Part shown: positions 6,441 through 59,234 of the stretch, in pieces
How the letters are laid out: each line of letters starts with the position of its first letter
Numbering within the stretch: the first letter of the stretch is position 1
Sequence record: NC_049340.1
Strand: one strand, 5' to 3'
Length of the DNA: 64,000 bases
The notes under the pieces: model-generated
What the model was told of the DNA's origin: nothing
Databases searched by the model: none
The model's input: only the letters and a program-made list of their open reading frames with translations
Position numbers and translations under genes: made by a program

Positions 6441-9400
6441 ATGATAACCATGTTCATAACCCAAGATAATAGAATACTAAATAATAACGACACACTTTAT
6501 TTTGAAAATACTAGTGTAGGATTATCTTCATCTAGAAATGTTTATTTAGTATCTGACACTAAGTTAACATCACTACAGATAAAATATAAATTAGATGATT
6601 CATTCTCTAATGATTTTAAGATATATTCATTAAATCGTTGGTCATATACCATTACAATAACAACTGGAACTGTTGTGGCTGGAACATTTAGCGTTCACGG
6701 TCACTCTATTACAGTTACTGCTACAGATACACCTACAACTGTAGCATCTAAGTTAAAAACTGTTATGGATTCATCAAATAAATATTATTCTGTTAGTGTA
6801 AATGCTGGTGTAGTTACTGTAATACCAACACAAAGTGGACAAACAGTTGATAATCATTTATCGAATGGAACAACAACATCTAATGGTATTACCTTTGATA
6901 CTGCTGGTGTAGCACCAACAGATATATTAACTATAGTATCCGAACAAAACTTAACCAACGTAGATTACTTTGAACGAAGTGGCAAACATGTTTATAAGAT
7001 AAATTTACTATTTTCACCACAATATGAAACTGGTGTACATGATGAGCAATATTCATTTGCACACAATTCACAGGTAGATATTGTATATAATAATGGAACA
7101 GCAAAGACACATTCAATTAAAGTTAATGGTAGATGTCAACACATAGATGGTAAGTTAACCGTTGCGTTACAAAACTTCAAAAAATACTTAAATGAGGATT
7201 ACTATCAGGCATTTTTTGATAGTAAACTAAACACCAATGAACAAGACCAAGTTTTACTAAACAGGAAAAAACGAGAATATTTAATGGTTATGTTCGAAAT
7301 GACAGGTTTTATTGGTGCATATAAGTCACTATTAACAGCTATTGAATATTTTGGTTGGGGTCAATTATTAGAACTTAAAGAATATTGGAAGTCTATAAGT
7401 TCTAATCAATATAAATTAACTAGCATAAAGAATCAGGTACTTGATAAGATTGATAAGCAATTGACAGGGTTTAAGAAATCTAACCAAATGTCGTTAACAT
7501 ATAAGGTTAATGATTTCAAGGGTAATTTTGATTCTGATGGATTACCCATTTATGAAAATGTATTGACAGACACCGACACAGTAATTACTAAATTATATAG
7601 TCTAAAGGCTGTATTGGAGTGTGATTTTTTAACGTTAAATACTAAGATTTTTGATATAACTGGTGAAATACAAGCAGTTGTTGGACATGAGTTAAATATA
7701 TGGTTAAATTCATCAACAATAACAGATGTTAGATTGAATGAAAACGTTAATAGTGATATTGAGTGGAGTGTAAAGGATAAAGTAATAGATATTGAAGAAC
7801 ACCAAGTAATTGTTGATGCATTTGCATTTGAAACAGATAATACAACAGCAGGTTCAGAAAAATTAAAATTCTTAACACCAACACCGACCTCAACCGCATT
7901 TAACAAAACATATTTTGATGTATTAAAGGTTTTAGATGATACAAGCACCTTAGCTGACTTTGAGTATGCTACACAATATGCTAGATTAGATTTTGGTTTA
8001 ATTGAATTAGACGTTACCAAAATAGAAACATCACTATACACATCATTTAGATATCTTGTTTATTTGTGGGGGTCTACCACAGAACTATTTAAGAGTAATA
8101 CTAAGCCTATTTCACAACTTGGTGGAGGTATTAAGTGTGGTATACAAAAAGTTGGTTCATTTAGGCTCGTATTAGCGTTATTTGACCATTATGGTGGAAT
8201 GTCTGTTGTTGGATTAAATGAAGCTATACAAGTAAGAAATAAACCAATAAACTTTAGGATTGCGAAACACTCTATAGTTGATACTGCTGGTGAATATAAA
8301 GATTTACGTTTACATTCAACAATGGAAGATTTAGTTTCAACTGATACGGATAAATCAAATGTTGTTGATAGTATTTCCGAGACACTAGATGTGAACACAT
8401 ACAACCCATTAACCAATATGCCAACAATGACGGTTTTGAAGCACTATGAAACTAAGTTTGATATGCATAGTGTATATTCACAAGTTCGTGAATTAAATTC
8501 TATACCTGCAACTAAAACAAAGGGGTTACCAGTAAGTATATGGGGTTATAAATACGGTACAATGATTTATGATATCATTGGAAATGGTAATCAAGGTAAT
8601 AGATATTTACGTTTACGATTATTCGACCATCATAATTGGAGTGAGGTTAGTTTATCTTATGATACAACAACATACCCAACACCTGAGAGATTCTTAATAC
8701 GTTTTATTGAATTATTAAATGGGCAACCAAGTACGTCACCATTCGCTAAGTTTACGTATGATATAAATTATTATAGTAATAATCCACAAGGGAATCAAAG
8801 TGATGGTAGACCAATGTTAAGGATAAAGGCGAAAGAGCCATCATTCACATTGAATATGTTTAGTTATGATGTACAAAAATCTTTTGCTCATACAGATTTT
8901 ACTGGTGCTATTGATACCACGGATATTATGATATTCTCTACAGTTGATACTAGTAACATTATCCAACATAATGGAAGAAATACAAGGTCTAATTTAGTTG
9001 TTAAGGTTGGTTCTAAAACACTTACAATGGATAAACCTTATGCTAATATTGATGAACTAATTACAGACTTAGATGCATGGAGAACAGCACAATCAGTAAA
9101 AGAATTATCATACTGGAAAGGGGATTCTAATACATTAGTTGTTACATGTCAAGCTGATTTTAGTTTAAAACATAATCAATTTGGACATTATGTTGATATT
9201 TTTAGAGGTGCTGTAGGTACACGATTAGAGTATATTCAAGATGGTACTGATATAAAATTAGGTGAACCAGTTTATGCATTTGTTGATGATAATTCAAAAT
9301 TAAATTCAGCAAACGTTAGTTGGGTGTTAAAGGATTCTTTAACAAATCAAGTTATAACAACTCAATATGCACAAGCATTTAGATATGTTATGGTTAAACA

Positions 9401-9491
9401 AGGTTCATTTACCTTAGAATGTACATCAACTGATAAATACGGAACAACAACCACAATAAAACAAGGTGTATATCTTGTTGATATGGTTTAA
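6441..9491 (+). CDS. large baseplate wedge protein (gp7-like)
   Basis: About 1000 aa; FIGAYKSLLTAIEYFGW tail-P2-I/gp7-like segment; AAATACAT at 6426 suggests a start at 6441. Confidence 0.55.
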   Translation: MITMFITQDNRILNNNDTLYFENTSVGLSSSRNVYLVSDTKLTSLQIKYKLDDSFSNDFKIYSLNRWSYTITITTGTVVAGTFSVHGHSITVTATDTPTTVASKLKTVMDSSNKYYSVSVNAGVVTVIPTQSGQTVDNHLSNGTTTSNGITFDTAGVAPTDILTIVSEQNLTNVDYFERSGKHVYKINLLFSPQYETGVHDEQYSFAHNSQVDIVYNNGTAKTHSIKVNGRCQHIDGKLTVALQNFKKYLNEDYYQAFFDSKLNTNEQDQVLLNRKKREYLMVMFEMTGFIGAYKSLLTAIEYFGWGQLLELKEYWKSISSNQYKLTSIKNQVLDKIDKQLTGFKKSNQMSLTYKVNDFKGNFDSDGLPIYENVLTDTDTVITKLYSLKAVLECDFLTLNTKIFDITGEIQAVVGHELNIWLNSSTITDVRLNENVNSDIEWSVKDKVIDIEEHQVIVDAFAFETDNTTAGSEKLKFLTPTPTSTAFNKTYFDVLKVLDDTSTLADFEYATQYARLDFGLIELDVTKIETSLYTSFRYLVYLWGSTTELFKSNTKPISQLGGGIKCGIQKVGSFRLVLALFDHYGGMSVVGLNEAIQVRNKPINFRIAKHSIVDTAGEYKDLRLHSTMEDLVSTDTDKSNVVDSISETLDVNTYNPLTNMPTMTVLKHYETKFDMHSVYSQVRELNSIPATKTKGLPVSIWGYKYGTMIYDIIGNGNQGNRYLRLRLFDHHNWSEVSLSYDTTTYPTPERFLIRFIELLNGQPSTSPFAKFTYDINYYSNNPQGNQSDGRPMLRIKAKEPSFTLNMFSYDVQKSFAHTDFTGAIDTTDIMIFSTVDTSNIIQHNGRNTRSNLVVKVGSKTLTMDKPYANIDELITDLDAWRTAQSVKELSYWKGDSNTLVVTCQADFSLKHNQFGHYVDIFRGAVGTRLEYIQDGTDIKLGEPVYAFVDDNSKLNSANVSWVLKDSLTNQVITTQYAQAFRYVMVKQGSFTLECTSTDKYGTTTTIKQGVYLVDMV

Positions 9492-9516
9492 AAGTTGAAC
9501 ATATGTTCAACTTTTT
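9490..9516 (+). terminator. intrinsic terminator
   Basis: Palindromic aaaagttgaacatatgttcaacttttt after the stop. Confidence 0.7.
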
Positions 9517-9521
9517 GTTCT

Positions 9522-9529
9522 TAATACAT
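9522..9529 (+). promoter_or_regulatory. candidate phage late promoter TAATACAT
   Basis: Same octamer at 15464, 37528, 42686, 51680, 54743 and at 41145 on the minus strand, all upstream of gene starts. Confidence 0.55.
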
Positions 9530-9642
9530 ATATAACAATTATGCGCATAATATTATTTATTCAACAGACGAGTTCCTAAAGTTCTCGCATTATTTTTTAA
9601 CGACATATTACAACCGATTCGGTTGATGGAAGAACCCTCGAC

Positions 9643-10110
9643 ATGAAAAACAAATCAAATTACCCAATCAAAGAAAGAAATGAAGCACTATTAAACATGT
9701 TCACATCAAATGGCTTTAATGCACAATTAGTAGGTGATATAAATCAACCAGCTATTGTCATTGATGGAAAGTATGCCATTGCTGGATATGTACACAACAA
9801 AGTTTATAATTTTTGTGATAAACCATTTGGTGGTACTGAAATACACTCTGTTACATTATCAGAAAATCCAAACATTTCAAGAACAAAAATCCTAGAATTA
9901 ATTCAAAAATCAGAAGTAAGAAAACTATACAAAATTAAAGTTAATTTTGGTAATCAATCATTATGGTACGCTAACCATAGAAATGACCATATTTACTTTA
10001 GTCCTACCGATACACGCTATTTCTTTTCACACCAAAATGCATTAAATGCATTGAACATGTTACGTGTAAATGGATATATCAATTCAACAATTGAAAGTCC
10101 AATAGTATAA
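9643..10110 (+). CDS. hypothetical protein
   Basis: 155 aa ORF followed by a terminator at 10109-10140. Confidence 0.55.
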   Translation: MKNKSNYPIKERNEALLNMFTSNGFNAQLVGDINQPAIVIDGKYAIAGYVHNKVYNFCDKPFGGTEIHSVTLSENPNISRTKILELIQKSEVRKLYKIKVNFGNQSLWYANHRNDHIYFSPTDTRYFFSHQNALNALNMLRVNGYINSTIESPIV

Positions 10111-10189
10111 AAAATCACGCCCATTAGGGTGTGATTTTTTGTTTATATAAATATTTTTGAAATATTATTGTTCAATTAAAATTATTTTA

Positions 10190-10197
10190 TATATTTG
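10190..10197 (+). promoter_or_regulatory. Bacteroidota sigmaA -7 element TATATTTG (early promoter)
   Basis: Matches TAnnTTTG; also at 15839, 17733, 18864, 24345, 27486, 29853, 30955, 32018, 32279, 32885, 33206, 61467, 63431 and 6397(-). Confidence 0.75.
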
Positions 10198-10217
10198 CAT
10201 TATTAAATATTAAAACA

Positions 10218-11042
10218 ATGAGTATAGAAACATTTTATATTGGTGGTAAGGAATTAACCAAAGAACAACTTAAATCAGATTTTAACATACCTACAGATAA
10301 TATTGATATTGTTGGTGTGAATTTAGTATCAACAAACGCTGATGACTTCATTAGACGTGCAAAGTTCTTAGAGGTTTGGAAGTGTTTTCCAATTGATGGG
10401 TTTGCTGATAAAACATATTTCAAGATTTATGATGGTTTGTTTACTGGTGAAGATAAGCAACCGTTAGATATTTTTAATGATTGTGTTGTTAATTTAAATA
10501 CACTTTCAAATATTGGTCTTGGTGAAAAAACTTCAATTAAATTTGTTGATGGTATTAATGGTCACAAAAACAATAAAATAACAATTGATAAAGTTGTTAG
10601 AATGATGGTTGTTGATGGTGCTGGTGATTCAACCATTGAAGAATTTGCACACTATCTTTGTGATAATCCATATGACTTTAGTGGTAAAACAAAAGTAGTT
10701 ATTGATGAGTTAAAAGGTAGTTCAGGTCGAATTGATGATACTATTGAATACTTAGAAGAGTATGGAATTGTAGTTGAGTCTTTAGCACCAAGAGAAGAGG
10801 CATCTGCTGATGATATTACTTTTGTTATGACAGGTAGACCACAGGCATGTGGATTTGAGGGTACAAAGGCTGTATTCAAATCACAATTACCATCTAACTG
10901 GACAGAAGTTAAGAAATTAACCACAGACACAACCTATTTAATTACTGGTGATTTAAATTCAACAAGTTCTAAGACAAAAACAGCATTAAAGAACGGTACT
11001 AAAATCATCACATACATGCAAGCACTAGAATTATGCAAATAG
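10218..11042 (+). CDS. HhH + BRCT protein resembling the C-terminal part of NAD+-dependent DNA ligase
   Basis: C-terminal BRCT (ITFVMTGR...KKLTTDTTYLITGDLNSTSSKTKTALKNGTKII); HhH-like FPIDGFADKT; no KxDG adenylation domain. Confidence 0.6.
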   Translation: MSIETFYIGGKELTKEQLKSDFNIPTDNIDIVGVNLVSTNADDFIRRAKFLEVWKCFPIDGFADKTYFKIYDGLFTGEDKQPLDIFNDCVVNLNTLSNIGLGEKTSIKFVDGINGHKNNKITIDKVVRMMVVDGAGDSTIEEFAHYLCDNPYDFSGKTKVVIDELKGSSGRIDDTIEYLEEYGIVVESLAPREEASADDITFVMTGRPQACGFEGTKAVFKSQLPSNWTEVKKLTTDTTYLITGDLNSTSSKTKTALKNGTKIITYMQALELCK

Positions 11043-24298: not shown

Positions 24299-24371
24299 TA
24301 CGTAGAAAAATTGTAAACATGTTTTGTGTTCCAATTTTTTTGTTTATATTTGTCAAACAAAAGTAAAGGAT

Positions 24372-24752: not shown

Positions 24753-25040
24753 ATGAGTACATCTAATTTATATAACACAATTCAAGAAAATTTCAATGGT
24801 AAGTCAGTAAAAGTTATTGATGGTCACTTAACAGCAACAGAGAAGAAACACGTACTAGCAATATTAGGTGCTGGGTTAACCGAGGGTTCTGTAAAAAAGA
24901 AATCTTATTGGATTGAGAAGACTGAAAACGAAAATGAATATATTGTTACAGTCGGTGAAATGGGATATGGTTTAATAAAATCATATGGACAAACAAAGAA
25001 GACATTCCAAAAAACAAAATCTAAGGTAATTATTAAAGAA
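24753..25040 (+). CDS. hypothetical protein/domain, in frame with the RtcB start
   Basis: 96 codons with no stop before MITG at 25041. Confidence 0.4.
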
Positions 25041-26769
<1,729 letters not shown>

Positions 26770-27136: not shown

Positions 27137-27451
27137 ATGAATATTACTAAACTACAAAAAGAATTTACAGGTATTGGTTCTGAGGTTCGTGGATTCAAAT
27201 TTAAACAGGTTCGAGAATCTGATTTAGGTTATATCTACGAAGTTGATAGCGGAACTACAAAATACTTTGAGGTATTTAAAAAGAAAACTGTTGCTGTTTG
27301 TCTAAATTTTGAGCAAAGAATATTTTCTGAAACTGACTTCAAAGAAACATATCCAAAGGCATCTGAGTTTGGATATACTGCATGGACATATGATAAATTG
27401 CAACGTGCAGTTGAAAAATTAGAAACATTTAAGAAAAAATCTGAGAAATAA
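27137..27451 (+). CDS. hypothetical protein
   Basis: ORF with a terminator overlapping the stop. Confidence 0.55.
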   Translation: MNITKLQKEFTGIGSEVRGFKFKQVRESDLGYIYEVDSGTTKYFEVFKKKTVAVCLNFEQRIFSETDFKETYPKASEFGYTAWTYDKLQRAVEKLETFKKKSEK

Positions 27452-27524
27452 TTCTCAGATTTTTTTGTTTTTAAAATAATAGTTGTATATTTGTCAAACA
27501 AAGTCAAAACAAAATATTATAATT

Positions 27525-27731
27525 ATGAAAAATACATTCACATTAATTCTTGTTAAAGATTCATTTGGTAACACAGCTTACAATACTGTAGAAGACACTT
27601 CTGATACAATTATGTTAAGTGATTTAAGAGACAAAGATAATCAACCTATTTATTTTGAATCAGAGGCATATCATGCATGTTCATTAGAGCAAGATGGTTG
27701 TGAAAATGATTTAAAAGTCATTCGATTTTGA
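27525..27731 (+). CDS. hypothetical protein
   Basis: Follows TATATTTG at 27486. Confidence 0.45.
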   Translation: MKNTFTLILVKDSFGNTAYNTVEDTSDTIMLSDLRDKDNQPIYFESEAYHACSLEQDGCENDLKVIRF

Positions 27732-27763
27732 AACTGAATTTAATAACGCATAAAACTAGAAGC

Positions 27764-28402
27764 ATGAATTTACAAGATTTAAAAAACAGTCAAGAGTATA
27801 TATTAAATATTAAAGACGTTAATGGTGCAATAGCATGTGTCGAAAGAATAAAAAACACTAATAGTATTTTATATAAAGTTAATAAACATACATCAGTTTA
27901 TTACAACTATGATGGTACATATGGTATTCATGTTGATTTACATGGATATAAATACAAAAAAGATTATAACGGTGATTGGGTTGTTGTGTTTCCTGATAAC
28001 CAACCACAGAAATTAGATGTTGTTCTTGATGTTGCATCAGTTATTGAATCACACAAGACATATTTATTAGATATACAAAACCAACTAAGAACAACACTAG
28101 CCGAACAATTAAGAAAGCATATGTTGGCTAATGAAATTTCAAAGTTTGGTCACGTACCTTATGATTATAAATGTGTCTTAAATACACTTAAATTAGCTGG
28201 TATTATTACATCCAACCAAGATACAATAAACTCTCACAACGTATTTATTTCAGTTAATAAAAATAATGTTGACCGTGTACAAGAATTAACACATGATAAG
28301 TTCAGTACAAAAAGAGATTGTATGAGTGGTTTGTATAGAAAATTCGTAACACTAGACAAACTAATCAAATTAGTTGAAGAGTATAATTCAATTGAAGACT
28401 AA
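27764..28402 (+). CDS. hypothetical protein
   Basis: ORF coupled to the glycosyltransferase. Confidence 0.55.
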   Translation: MNLQDLKNSQEYILNIKDVNGAIACVERIKNTNSILYKVNKHTSVYYNYDGTYGIHVDLHGYKYKKDYNGDWVVVFPDNQPQKLDVVLDVASVIESHKTYLLDIQNQLRTTLAEQLRKHMLANEISKFGHVPYDYKCVLNTLKLAGIITSNQDTINSHNVFISVNKNNVDRVQELTHDKFSTKRDCMSGLYRKFVTLDKLIKLVEEYNSIED

Positions 28403-29817
28403 TGAAAAGACAAATATTTTGTAGGTTTGATAACCAAGCCGATTTAAATACACTATCCAGCTTTTTACCAAGGAAAATAGACACGACAATAGCTGAATAT
28501 GACCTTGATGATAATAAGGTCTTAAAGTTAAGTAAACGTAAACATTTACCAGTTAACTTTGGTGAGGATAAGTATGGATGGCGACACCATTATAGAGGTA
28601 TGCCAATATTCCAAAGTAAGGAAGTACTACCATATCACCTAATCATATTTCATACGACAAAATCACCAAGTGAATTAACTGAGTTATTTAAACAACAAGT
28701 AACAGACCGAACAAAAAGTATTTGGTTTCCTCAGCTAGAAGTTGGTAAACATTCAAAATATAGATTAGTTTGTGGTGAATCAAATAACAAATATCCAATA
28801 TATGTTGTTTCAAAGGGTCGTTCAAATAACTGTTCAACCTCAAAATACTTATCACAAATGGAAGTAAAACATTTCGTTGCGGTAGAACCAAATGAAGTTA
28901 GTTCATATAAGTCTGAGTTAGATTTGAATTATGCTACCGTATTGGAAATGGATATGTCGTATAAGGATAATTATGATACGTTTAGTGATTTGGGTAAGAA
29001 TAGTAGTACAGGGCCAGGTGCGGTGAGGAATTTTTGTTGGGAACATTCAATAAAAAATGGTCATAAGTGGCATTGGGTTATGGATGATAATGCTATTGAG
29101 GGATTCCATTACTTATACCAAAACACAAAGATTAAATCTAGAACTGGTGCATATTTTAGAGCGTGTGAGGATTTTGTTGATAGATATGATAATATTGCTA
29201 TTGGTGGATTAAATTACACAATGTTTTGTAAGATGACAGATAAAACACCACCTTATATTTTAAACACACGTATTTATTCATTCCTACTTATTAGAAATGA
29301 TATTCCATATCGTTGGAGGGGTAGATATAATGAGGATACTGATTTATCACTTAGGGTTCTTAAAGATGATTGGTGTACTATTCAATTCAATTTCTTTTTG
29401 GCTGGTAAATCTACCACACAGCGAGTTAGTGGAGGTAATACAAAAGAGTTCTATAAAGAAGAGGGTACTAAGAATAAATCACAAATGTTGGTTGATATGC
29501 ATCCTGATGTAGCCAAAATGATTTGGCGTTTTAATAGATGGCATCACACAGTAGATTATTCAGGATTTAAACAACGTTTGAAACTTAACGATAACATTAA
29601 CCTAAAAGGAATACCAAAGGTTGATAATTATGGTACAAAAATTATAAAAACTATTGAAGAAGAAACAAGCCATTCAAAGATGTGGTTAGAATCTAAATAT
29701 AGTTCACAATTATCTAATTACAAACCACCAGTATTCAACACATACGATAAAGAACCTAGTAGAAAAAAACCTTTATCATTCGCAGAATTAATGCGAGCAA
29801 AAAAATCCAAGAAATAA
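28402..29817 (+). CDS. TAGT/GREB1-like GT-A glycosyltransferase with fused N-terminal accessory domain
   Basis: PIYVVSKGR, GPGAVRNFCW, WVMDDN, RGRYNEDTDLSLRVLK, KSTTQRVSGGNT; N-terminal YRGMPIFQ...TDRTKSIWFP module. Confidence 0.75.
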   Translation: MKRQIFCRFDNQADLNTLSSFLPRKIDTTIAEYDLDDNKVLKLSKRKHLPVNFGEDKYGWRHHYRGMPIFQSKEVLPYHLIIFHTTKSPSELTELFKQQVTDRTKSIWFPQLEVGKHSKYRLVCGESNNKYPIYVVSKGRSNNCSTSKYLSQMEVKHFVAVEPNEVSSYKSELDLNYATVLEMDMSYKDNYDTFSDLGKNSSTGPGAVRNFCWEHSIKNGHKWHWVMDDNAIEGFHYLYQNTKIKSRTGAYFRACEDFVDRYDNIAIGGLNYTMFCKMTDKTPPYILNTRIYSFLLIRNDIPYRWRGRYNEDTDLSLRVLKDDWCTIQFNFFLAGKSTTQRVSGGNTKEFYKEEGTKNKSQMLVDMHPDVAKMIWRFNRWHHTVDYSGFKQRLKLNDNINLKGIPKVDNYGTKIIKTIEEETSHSKMWLESKYSSQLSNYKPPVFNTYDKEPSRKKPLSFAELMRAKKSKK

Positions 29818-36088: not shown

Positions 36089-36514
36089 ATGATAAAAACA
36101 ACAATAGAAATAACATTAGCATCCTCTAGTAATTCACATGATAAAAGGATGAATTTAATAAATAAAAGCCAAACAAAAATTTTGGATTACCTTGATAAGA
36201 GGTTATTTAAGTATAATGTAAGAACAAGTGATTCTGATAATATACTACAAATAGTTAATAGTAGTATAGAGGACACTAAAGGTACTTACGAGGTATATCC
36301 AACAAAGTTAACATTCAATATAGAATATAAAACACAAAGTGAATTAGGTTCTTTATTGAAGACCAATGAACGAAATAAGGTTAGGTTATTAAATACTTAT
36401 GTATCAAAAAATAACCAAGAAATTACATCAATTGTAAATAAGTTGGTTAAAAATCTTAATAGATGGTATTCAGGTAATTTAATTAACCAAGAAATTAAAA
36501 TCACAAATGAGTAA
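36089..36514 (+). CDS. hypothetical protein
   Basis: ORF coupled to DHFR. Confidence 0.5.
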   Translation: MIKTTIEITLASSSNSHDKRMNLINKSQTKILDYLDKRLFKYNVRTSDSDNILQIVNSSIEDTKGTYEVYPTKLTFNIEYKTQSELGSLLKTNERNKVRLLNTYVSKNNQEITSIVNKLVKNLNRWYSGNLINQEIKITNE

Positions 36515-37078
36515 AATAAAATTAATATCAGCAGTATCAAGAAACGGAATAATAGGAAAGAATAATACTCTTATTTGGAAGTTAAGAAAAGACCTAGCTT
36601 GGTTTAAGAAACAAACATTAAATACTGTTATGATAATGGGTAGAAGTACATTTGAATCACTTCCATCATTATTACCAAATCGTGAGCATTGGATATTATC
36701 TAGAACCATGAATATACAACCAATGGTAGAGTAAATTCAAAACAAAGAGTAAGAGTATTTAGGTCATATGAAGAAGCTATTACAGAAGCAAAAGAGCGAG
36801 GTTTAGACGTTTCTGTTATCGGTGGGTCAAAAGTTTATGAAACTGCCTTAAATCTACATGAGAAAGGCAAATATAAGCTGTATGAAGTTCTATTAACTGA
36901 ATTAGAATCTATTGTTCTTGGTGATACTTACTTCCCACATTTTGAGAAGAAGAATTTTCATAAACATACTCTTGGAGTTGAAGAAGAGTTTTGTGATATA
37001 ACCAAGGTTAATTATAAAATGTCATTTACTAAGTATGTTCCAAAAACTATTGTTCGTAAATTGGGTGAAAAGTATTAG
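36507..37078 (+). CDS. folA: dihydrofolate reductase, apparent frameshift near 36711
   Basis: LISAVSRNGIIGKNNTLIW, DLAWFK, IMGRSTFESL, LLPNRE; after the shift SVIGGSKVY and GDTYFP. Confidence 0.9.
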
Positions 37079-37549: not shown

Positions 37550-38139
37550 ATGGAAATGGTAATAGATTCATTAGAGAGAAGAGCAAGAGAATTTTTCTTT
37601 AAAGCACACAATGACACAAATCATACATACGGTGATAAACCATATACATTCCACTTGGAACATACTGCGGATGTTGCTAGAAAGTTCGGTTATATTTTAG
37701 AAACACCTGAACGCATTTCAAAAGCTATCGCATGTGCATATGGACATGATGCTGTATCTGATGCTAGGGTATCACGCAATGATATTTATAAAAATCTAGG
37801 TGATATTGATGTTGCTAATATTTGTTCTGATTTGGTTGAGGATATGCATGGATATGTTCGTGATGATAGAAATAGTGATGCATATTATGCTAGAATTAAG
37901 AAGACTGTAATTGGTGTTTTCGTAAAATTGTGTGACCGAATTGCCAATTTAGAAAATGGTATTTGGGAGGGTGGTACAATGTCAATAAAATATAAACAAG
38001 AGATTTTCAAGTTTTATGAAAATTATATCATCCACTTTTTGATGATATGTGGGAATATTTATTCTCATTAGTGGATAATGTAAATTTACCATCAATTGAA
38101 AACTCATATAAACAATTAAGAAATAATTATAAACAATAA
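37550..38139 (+). CDS. SpoT/Mesh1-like HD hydrolase (small alarmone hydrolase-like), apparent frameshift near 38020
   Basis: KAHND...YGDKPYTFHL, AYGHDAVSD, VKLCDRIANL. Confidence 0.75.
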
Positions 38140-57713: not shown

Positions 57714-58612
57714 ATGATACACACATTTTGGCACAATACGGATACAAACAAAAAATTACCATTCAATAACGTTAATTGCATAAAATCTTGGATACACCAA
57801 GGTAAAGAAATTAATATATGGGTATATGATGATAACATATTAACATCAGAGTTCAAAACTTTTTGTAACAATAATGAATTAATATCAATAAATGATGCAG
57901 ACCAAATAATACCATACGATGAATATACAACAATTGATTATGGGTCAAACGGTCATTCATTCGCATCATTTTCAGATGTATTTAGATACAAGGTTTTAGA
58001 TATTTTTGGTGGTTGGTGGTTGGATACTGATATTATATTATTGAATAGGAATTTAGATGTACTAGAAAATGATTTAGATGATGATTCTGAGCCACTTTTT
58101 TTCATAGAACGATACTCAACCCACCAAGACCACTTAAAGTTGAATAATGCGGTTATATATGCACCAAAAAAAGGTATTATGGATTCATTTTATAAAGAAT
58201 CATTAAGTATCTTAAATGATATGATTGAAAATAAAAGATTGGTAGTGTTTGGGGTAATACTGGGCCAGACCTTATTACGGATAGAAAAAATGATGTTAAT
58301 CATGGTGATTATAGGGATTTCTATCTGATAGACTTCTATACATACACAGGAAGTTTATATAGCTATGCATATAGTCAATTAACCATGGATAACTTAGTTA
58401 GATTCTTTAAACAAAAACCATTTGGAATACACTTATGGGAATCTTATTTATATAAACATGGTAATATTAAGAGATTTTCATTATTTGATTTATGTTTTAG
58501 ACTATCACACAAAGGTAAAGAAATTACAATAGAAAATATAATTGATGAACTACCACCACATATGGTCGGTGTGTTCCCAAATGTAACTAGACCAAATCAC
58601 TTAGATGGATAA
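57714..58612 (+). CDS. GT32-like (DxD) glycosyltransferase, apparent frameshift in G-run 58251-58254
   Basis: IHTFW, SFSDVFRY...GGWWLDTD, NNAVI; after the shift GNTGPDLIT and IHLWES. Confidence 0.8.
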
Positions 58613-59234
58613 AAAAATAAGAATTTTTGATGGAGTTGATGGAGTAGGTAAAACAACATCATTATTATGGTTAAAGAAATATTACGAAAACAAGGGCAAT
58701 AATGTTGTAGTTTTACATGAAAAAAATAGAAAACAATTACTACCATATAAATACTTTATTCAAAATAGAACAACCATAAAGGACTATCACGAAAAGCAAA
58801 TACTTTCACTAGACTCATATTCATATTTCATACAAATATTATTTGAGCAAGGTGTTGATGTTATTCTTATTGATAGAATGTTTTTAACACAGAAGTTCTA
58901 TGCGGATATAAATAGACCAAAATCAATAGAGCGTGTTTTTGGTTCTAGTGAAACATTTATAAAGTATATCAATGTTTTTGAAAAGCAACTACTTAGAATA
59001 ACAGATGATGTTGAATTATATTGTTTTGTTAAAGAGATAAATTCAAAATTTGTTGATGATACTGATGATGTGCGGTGGACACAACAAGCACAAAAACTAG
59101 AATGTATAAATAAATTATTTGCAACTGATTATAATAAAATCACCAAGCATATAAAGTCTGTTAAATTTACATGTACTGATGTTGGTGGATATTATGATGC
59201 AAAAGAACAGCTTATTAATTATATAACCAATTAA
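58605..59234 (+). CDS. thymidylate/dNMP kinase-like protein
   Basis: IFDGVDGVGKTT P-loop; ILIDR motif. Confidence 0.75.
   Translation: MDKKIRIFDGVDGVGKTTSLLWLKKYYENKGNNVVVLHEKNRKQLLPYKYFIQNRTTIKDYHEKQILSLDSYSYFIQILFEQGVDVILIDRMFLTQKFYADINRPKSIERVFGSSETFIKYINVFEKQLLRITDDVELYCFVKEINSKFVDDTDDVRWTQQAQKLECINKLFATDYNKITKHIKSVKFTCTDVGGYYDAKEQLINYITN

Follow-up and report, generated by a model that had tools for sequence, protein, structure and literature searches.

The open reading frame (ORF) at positions 28402–29817 (+ strand) of the DNA analyzed here encodes a two-part glycosyltransferase (GT) of 471 aa, PTm1_ORF-209, in which a partner module, a TAGT catalytic domain, and a C-terminal extension are joined in a single chain. 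The analyzed stretch of 64,000 nucleotides, hereafter the window, corresponds to bases 124001–188000 of the 224,680-bp genome of Tenacibaculum phage PTm1 (NC_049340.1/AP019524.1). ORF-209 is a genuine member of the TAGT family with a GT-A fold, looks catalytically competent, and may act in PTm1 on DNA containing 5-hydroxycytosine (5hoC) or on the first sugar attached to that base, a tentative reading to which we give slightly less than an even chance. The protein is identical in the sister phage PTm5, and it is the sole copy of both the partner module and the TAGT domain in the PTm1 genome.

The catalytic domain, residues 131–344 (28792–29433, + strand), matches the Pfam family TAGT (PF20691) with an E-value of 5.3e-38 and 131.5 bits against a cut-off of 27.5, covering profile positions 1–204 of 205. 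The preliminary description of this DNA, made from the sequence alone, had placed a TAGT-like GT-A enzyme at exactly this ORF, and both the Pfam match and the structural model bear it out. ORF-209 also matches PHROG 842 (E 4e-48), while no NCBIfam family covers it and a sequence search of the PDB with the ORF-209 family profile detected no solved structure. The AlphaFold2 (AF2) model, built with 44 homologues as input, has a mean predicted local distance difference test score (pLDDT) of 91.8 and a predicted template modeling score (pTM) of 0.88, and the module and the catalytic domain are packed together in it. In Foldseek, the core of ORF-209 was assigned with a probability of 1.0 to GT2-type GT-A enzymes (heparosan synthase, chondroitin polymerase, SpsA, and TarP), and the fold neighbors also include the protein- or nucleoside-directed GT-A enzymes SunS, COLGALT1, and AvpGT.

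Across the 44 aligned homologues, little or no variation is seen in W225-x-x-D228-D229-N230, in R306-G-x-Y-N-E311-D312-T, and in further motifs that reach to about residue 390. The DxD motif (D228-D229 within W-V-M-D-D-N, 29083–29088, + strand) and the E311-D312 pair are invariant in all 44, and ORF-209 is judged to be catalytically competent because the DxD motif, the R306–D312 block, and the further motifs are kept in this way. The catalytic domain is followed by a conserved C-terminal extension, residues 345–440 (29434–29721, + strand), which carries HPD and RWHH motifs with the near-invariant residues H367, P368, R379, H381, H382, and Y386 and is modeled with a pLDDT above 90 up to about residue 440. 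The last 30 or so residues form a variable, lysine-rich tail (29722–29814, + strand) that is unconserved in the alignment and has a pLDDT of 46–73.

Residues 1–125 of ORF-209 have no match in Pfam, PHROG, or NCBIfam. The core of the partner module, residues ~55–125 (28564–28776, + strand), follows the pattern W..H[WY].GMP.F ... T[KR]SIW[FY]P; in ORF-209 the GMPxF...TKSIWFP motif lies at residues ~55–112, and M67, P68, Q98, T104, S106, W108, and P110 are near-invariant in the module. An exhaustive HMMER search with residues 1–133 yielded 116 cluster representatives, the top matches among which are the N-termini of TAGT proteins, and most of the others are stand-alone proteins of 76–145 aa that match only residues ~50–125 and share the consensus W..HW.GMPEF...T[KR]SIW[FY]P. 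In both contigs with readable context (2/2), the stand-alone module gene overlaps the start of a TAGT gene (286 and 306 aa) by 4 nt, and one such readable split locus lies between a gene for a DnaB-like helicase, with Rad52 further upstream, and the gene for the DNA polymerase III beta clamp. The preliminary description had named the module as a small neighboring gene, and these stand-alone forms agree with it. It had also pointed out the fusion in ORF-209, which is no special event. Because about 8000 database homologues contain the fused module and TAGT domain, with 50–63% identity over 92–95% of ORF-209, fusion is the normal state of the ORF-209 subfamily rather than an oddity.

The N-terminal residues 1–45 (28402–28536, + strand), which form a beta-alpha-beta-beta unit present in the fused forms only, had been described as a second partial copy of the module. 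Profile–profile comparison by hhalign aligned residues 4–33 with residues 80–107 at a probability of 78% (P 1.7e-5), with control segments below 0.3%, and both segments are beta-alpha-beta units in the AF2 model. We regard residues 1–45 as a weakly supported internal repeat of the module core. For the module alone, a fold search gave a best Z of 2.8 to a mixture of small ferredoxin-like domains and no fold was assigned, Foldseek gave nothing below an E-value of 2, and a search of the ESM Atlas retrieved only unnamed viral clusters. In one metagenomic protein, P0141 (315 aa), the module (residues 21–93) is fused to a GT-A enzyme of the Gly_transf_sug/Caps_synth/TcdA-like type rather than to TAGT. 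Because P0141 joins the module to another GT-A family, the module is predicted to serve glycosyltransferases as such, in more than one GT family.

The genes that suggest an acceptor lie just before the window. The absence of a TET protein or a hydroxymethylase, as noted in the preliminary description, is true of the window itself; a thymidylate synthase (TS) homologue, ORF-167 (genome 123174–123851), ends only 150 nt before its first base. A search of the whole PTm1 genome, which that description had proposed, found no match to Tet_JBP (PF12851), and the association with a TET/JBP dioxygenase, from which TAGT takes its name and which the HMM does not require, is thus absent from PTm1. The genome encodes two TS-family genes. 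One is ORF-285 (genome 199563–201146), a canonical ThyA (PF00303, E 4e-82) of 527 aa with a large insertion, probably an intein or a homing endonuclease, which is annotated just as "HNH endonuclease". The other, ORF-167, is divergent, with only 34 bits on the TS model, and leads to PDB 9iqu/9iqc at an E-value of 3e-42. We take PDB 9IQU/9IQC/9IR2 to be the HY126 enzyme of He et al., although a paper search for the codes gave chance matches only.

TS homologues sharing ~40% identity with ORF-167 occur in Shewanella phage Thanatos, in Dhaka-, Marfa-, and Tegunaviruses, and in phages of Acinetobacter and Rhizobium. TS homologues of this type have been identified as flavin-dependent 5-hydroxy-dCMP synthases by Lee et al. 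(NAR 2026, PMC13326640), who found D169N (E. coli ThyA numbering) to be diagnostic for these enzymes, alongside N177D and L143E, and showed that the Thanatos enzyme produced 5-hydroxydeoxycytidine (5hodC) in vivo. At positions 143/169/177, in the aligned motifs EYPC and RSNN...LD, ORF-167 has E/N/D like Thanatos TH062, as against D/D/D in T6 gp42 and L/D/N in canonical ThyA. By its residues, ORF-167 thus bears the L143E/D169N/N177D signature predicted for a 5-hydroxy-dCMP synthase.

The two genes directly upstream agree with this assignment. ORF-165 matches Thanatos TH060 over its whole length (27% identity over 565 aa, E 2e-27) and phrog_4098 (E 1e-75), has weak NTP_transferase and kinase-like Pfam matches, and shows the nucleotidyltransferase-plus-kinase architecture of AfhE, an arabinose-5-phosphate kinase/UDP-arabinose pyrophosphorylase (PMC13326640). 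ORF-166 belongs to the histidine-phosphatase family and stands in place of the Thanatos HAD phosphatase, and the order ORF-165-166-167 mirrors that of TH060-061-062. The PTm1 genome gave no match to a SIS isomerase (arabinose-5-phosphate isomerase, PF01380) in a search that detected 14 of its 14 controls; the missing step may be supplied by the host or may point to a different sugar.

The cluster also contains its own glycosyltransferase, which is frameshifted in the deposited genome. ORF-163 and ORF-164 (genome 119654–120693, 3.3–4.3 kb before the window start) match the N- and C-terminal parts of PHROG 3891 (phrog_3891), respectively, are colinear with the Thanatos GT TH063 (E 4e-5 and 6e-7), and overlap in different frames, with the same layout in PTm5. 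In contigs of PTm1 relatives from three independent public metagenome runs, a single additional A follows genome position 120121 and joins ORF-163/164 into one ORF of 346 aa; the other indels in these contigs relative to PTm1 are of 9 nt. Because all three runs carry the A that restores the frame, the 5hoC-cluster GT appears to be uninterrupted in nature, with a frameshift after codon 156 in the deposited PTm1 and PTm5 genomes. The 1-nt gap reflects either a true lesion or a sequencing error common to the two records, and if the lesion is true, another GT must act on 5hoC or the 5hoC stays bare.

With the 5hoC systems of RB69, DLP3, Thanatos, HY126, and RL38J1 (PMC13326640), PTm1 shares the TS homologue of the 5-hydroxy-dCMP synthase type, the AfhE-like enzyme in the Thanatos gene order, a TH063-like GT, and a Tmk-like kinase. 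It differs from them in the histidine phosphatase that replaces the HAD phosphatase, in the lack of a SIS isomerase, in the frameshift of the cluster GT, and in its Bacteroidota host. ORF-209 would be a new kind of component in a 5hoC system.

The signature of ORF-167 and the AfhE-like ORF-165 make 5hoC DNA or its first sugar the likeliest acceptor of ORF-209, rather than hydroxymethylcytosine (hmC). The role in DNA hypermodification proposed in the preliminary description is therefore plausible, with 5hoC replacing a hydroxymethylpyrimidine as the candidate base, and the acceptor, which had been left undefined there, is narrowed by two genes just outside the window. We infer that DNA is the acceptor, that 5hoC or its sugar is the site, and likewise which sugar is moved and what the module does. 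ORF-167 would convert dCMP to 5-hydroxy-dCMP as a hydroxylase of the flavin-dependent type, and the hydroxylated nucleotide would be phosphorylated and then built into DNA. After replication, the 5-hydroxyl, or the first sugar on it, would be glycosylated on the phage's own DNA. ORF-209 would be an active two-part Leloir glycosyltransferase, the TAGT GT-A domain of which transfers a sugar from a nucleoside-diphosphate sugar of the host or the phage, and one of up to three candidate transferases, together with the frameshifted GT-B enzyme ORF-163/164 and the GT32-like ORF-257. The virus-specific N-terminal module, packed on the catalytic domain, would be an obligate accessory part, present in many other phages as a separate, translationally coupled subunit, and probably shapes acceptor binding.

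Several observations weigh against the view that ORF-209 acts on 5hoC DNA. The literature searched reports no nucleoside data on PTm1 DNA. ORF-209 is 28.5 kb away from the 5hoC cluster and unlinked to it, and it is a GT-A/TAGT enzyme, whereas the known 5hoC transferases are GT-B enzymes encoded in the cluster (PMC13326640). Among 382 phage records with ORF-167 homologues, a homologue of ORF-209 occurs only in PTm1 and PTm5. The viral contigs with close ORF-209 homologues were taken as 68 IMG/VR records (39 and 29); 14 of the 68, ranging from 30 kb up to a 414-kb jumbo phage, are at least 90% complete, and many are fragments. A TS-family gene is found in none of the 68 (0/39 and 0/29, including the 14 that are at least 90% complete), a DpdA/TGT gene in none of 39, and a TET match above the cut-off in none of 44, although the control on TET was weak, the final run lacking a positive one. 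In the reverse direction, none of four records with ORF-167 relatives contains TAGT, but this says nothing on the matter, as all four are fragments of 24–32% completeness. Kuja, Aeromonas 65, POP12, and GD virus 1, which carry ORF-209 homologues, encode only ordinary-type TS, and Aeh1 and Aeromonas 65 are recorded as lacking genes 42 and 56 (PMC2993671). The TS of Kuja and of Aeromonas 65 were also considered as dUMP hydroxymethylases and rejected, since they retain L143, D169, and N177, and their nearest relatives are the TS of T5-like phages. Taken at the level of gene content, the ORF-209 subfamily appears not to travel with any known base-hydroxylating enzyme, and the tie of the subfamily to TET or to hydroxymethylated pyrimidines assumed in the preliminary description is not upheld. 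In addition, the TAGT protein GREB1 O-GlcNAcylates a protein, ER-alpha (PMC7968844). The stand-alone modules are mostly acidic, with a median isoelectric point of 5, and give no hint of DNA binding, which speaks against the module being just a domain that binds DNA.

The gene contents of the relatives lead to another explanation, which is possible but doubtful: ORF-209 may be a DNA glycosyltransferase with an acceptor unrelated to 5hoC, at another DNA position, for instance a canonical base or a different modified base, and PTm1 would then have two independent DNA modifications. Besides the overwhelming lack of TS, TET, and DpdA/TGT genes in phages with the subfamily and the distance of ORF-209 from the 5hoC cluster, gene positions typical of DNA modification favor it. 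At about 30 of 64 IMG/VR loci, a conserved ORF of 106 aa, unmatched in Pfam, comes within ~50 nt after the TAGT gene, with the gene for the large terminase next in line, and a DUF1376 protein is often encoded ~1 kb upstream. The slot directly before the large terminase is a common place for orphan DNA-modification genes. The homologue in Vibrio phage 1.124.O sits beside a Dam methylase and a dUTPase, and that in GD virus 1 sits after replicative helicases. Overall, the neighborhoods of ORF-209 homologues, with genes for replication, recombination, methylation, and packaging, point to DNA. However, canonical bases offer no hydroxyl group, and Leloir-type sugar transfer onto an unmodified DNA base is not known; moreover, fragments are frequent among the contigs, the TET search lacked a positive control, and an unrecognized hydroxylase could exist. 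It is quite unlikely, in our estimate, that the module-plus-TAGT enzymes in general glycosylate a DNA position that is canonical or modified by the host and need no hydroxylated or exchanged base made by the phage, with the module recognizing the acceptor. If true, this would be a DNA glycosylation so far undescribed, in thousands of mostly marine phages, and an independent second modification in PTm1. Among the relatives, Vibrio phage Kuja (Ackermannviridae) carries two tandem, overlapping module-plus-TAGT paralogues of 452 and 446 aa that adjoin a DNA end-protector gene (8001–10689 of the locus extract).

An acceptor other than DNA, namely a phage or host protein, a small molecule, or a nucleotide, is unlikely. 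In this case, the module would be an adaptor or even the carrier of the acceptor, and its stand-alone forms, small and acidic with a near-invariant Thr/Ser in T[KR]S, would be suited to it, as would the activity of GREB1, the independence of the subfamily from base-modifying enzymes, and the fold neighbors SunS, COLGALT1, and AvpGT. Fold neighbors as distant as these are uninformative on the acceptor, however, and the genes around the homologues are concerned with DNA replication, recombination, and packaging, not with structure or lysis. Furthermore, both characterized microbial relatives, the T2/T6 beta-glucosyl-HMC-alpha-glucosyltransferase (Ggt) and the kinetoplastid base-J glucosyltransferase (JGT), act on DNA. 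JGT acts on hydroxymethyluracil that is made in DNA by JBP, a TET/JBP oxygenase. JGT and GREB1 have the TAGT domain in common with ORF-209 at the family level (Pfam, PMC7968844), but they are large eukaryotic proteins, and neither is known to carry the phage partner module.

The RefSeq product name of ORF-209, "beta-glucosyl-HMC-alpha-glucosyltransferase", inherited from PHROG 842, would make it a T2/T6-type Ggt that adds a second glucose onto alpha-glucosyl-hmC, which is hardly conceivable: the shared Pfam family and the name of PHROG 842 speak for it, but the sequence, the architecture, and the missing substrate pathway effectively exclude orthology with T6 Ggt. T2/T6 Ggt, a PF20691 member that glucosylates glucosyl-hmC DNA (PMC13216743, PMC13390438), resembles ORF-209 in its GT-A fold, its DxD motif, and its phage origin, and it is a post-replicative DNA sugar-transferase working alongside other GTs. 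T6 Ggt differs in having 261 aa, in lacking the N-terminal module or a partner gene, and in adjoining gene 42. In BLASTP, the two proteins align only over the WxxDD segment with the DxD motif, at an E-value of 4.4, and at such a distance the RefSeq name is unjustified and the function of Ggt is not transferable. The PTm1 genome has no match to alpha-GT or beta-GT (PF11440, PF09198), and ORF-167 has N169, the 5-hydroxylase signature, in place of the D of the hmC synthases; without an hmC-type synthase and an alpha- or beta-GT, glucosyl-hmC, the acceptor of T6 Ggt, cannot exist in PTm1.

ORF-209 probably forms one transcription unit with the two hypothetical genes in front of it, ORF-207 and ORF-208 (27525–28402, + strand), neither of which has a match in Pfam, PHROG, or NCBIfam. 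This arrangement is suggested by the overlap of the ORF-208 stop and the ORF-209 start as TAATG (28400–28404) and by two upstream elements, an intrinsic-terminator-like hairpin followed by a promoter-like 14-mer. The hairpin (27433–27466, + strand), a 15-bp stem followed by a T-run, closes the unit ending with ORF-206. The 14-mer TATATTTGTCAAAC (27486–27499, + strand) lies 25 nt before ORF-207 and holds a TAnnTTTG box. It has three exact copies in the genome (window 24345–24358, window 27486–27499, and genome 64969), each on the + strand and 20–30 nt 5' of an ATG. It is likely to be a phage promoter motif of the Bacteroidota type, presuming that the TAnnTTTG box corresponds to the Bacteroidota -7 consensus. 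An Rfam scan of the entire window gave no match.

The other genes that the preliminary description had cited as signs of a modified-nucleotide pathway fared unevenly: the second GT is real, and the kinase is weak. The second GT, ORF-257 (57714–58328, + strand), is a GT-A enzyme of the Gly_transf_sug/Caps_synth type (PF04488, E 2.3e-6; PF05704, E 1.2e-5) and, besides ORF-163/164, the only GT found in PTm1 together with ORF-209. It is 25% identical to the GT part of P0141 (pairwise E 5e-6) and is located two genes before ORF-259 (58605–59234, + strand), a P-loop kinase resembling thymidylate kinase (Tmk), with 24.3 bits on PF02223, below the cut-off of 27, and a weak match to TIGR00041. Known 5hoC clusters hold a Tmk-like "nucleotide kinase", for example RB69 gp45 and DLP3 gp78 (PMC13326640, Table 1), and by analogy ORF-259 is a possible counterpart. 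The annotated dihydrofolate reductase (36507–36734) is an N-terminal fragment of 75 aa covering Pfam positions 2–69 of 159; the following ~460 nt, to 37197, contain no + strand ORF of at least 30 aa, and no Rfam match, such as to a group I intron, was found in the region. The proposed nucleotidase (37550–38071) has no Pfam match. Elsewhere in the window, at 24753–26413, an ORF of 174 aa that weakly matches a tRNA-nucleotidyltransferase domain comes before an RtcB RNA ligase (PF01139, E 6e-36), and the two may form a pair for RNA repair.

Adding sugars to DNA bases is among the main ways in which phages evade restriction enzymes, CRISPR nucleases, and DNA glycosylases. Solitary TAGT homologues, of undefined role, occur in 288 of 753 GT-bearing phage genomes (PMC13216743), and ORF-209, encoded without an alpha-GT or beta-GT, is a solitary TAGT in the sense of that study. 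The study, from 2026, makes no mention of the partner module and its separate or joined occurrence, nor of the lack of enzymes that hydroxylate bases. With solitary TAGT proteins of unexplained role in more than one third of the GT-bearing genomes, ORF-209 informs a very large branch. This branch is made up of two-part enzymes, with a helper module, so far undescribed, that occurs either as its own gene or joined to the GT, and it appears independent of the known base-hydroxylating enzymes. PTm1 is set apart among solitary-TAGT phages by its putative 5hoC pathway, and as a cultured phage of a fish pathogen, considered for phage therapy, it combines ORF-209 with such a pathway, the own GT of which is frameshifted in the deposited genomes. 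This makes PTm1 a convenient model in which to find out what solitary TAGT enzymes glycosylate, and it may extend 5hoC-type DNA to the phages of Bacteroidota.

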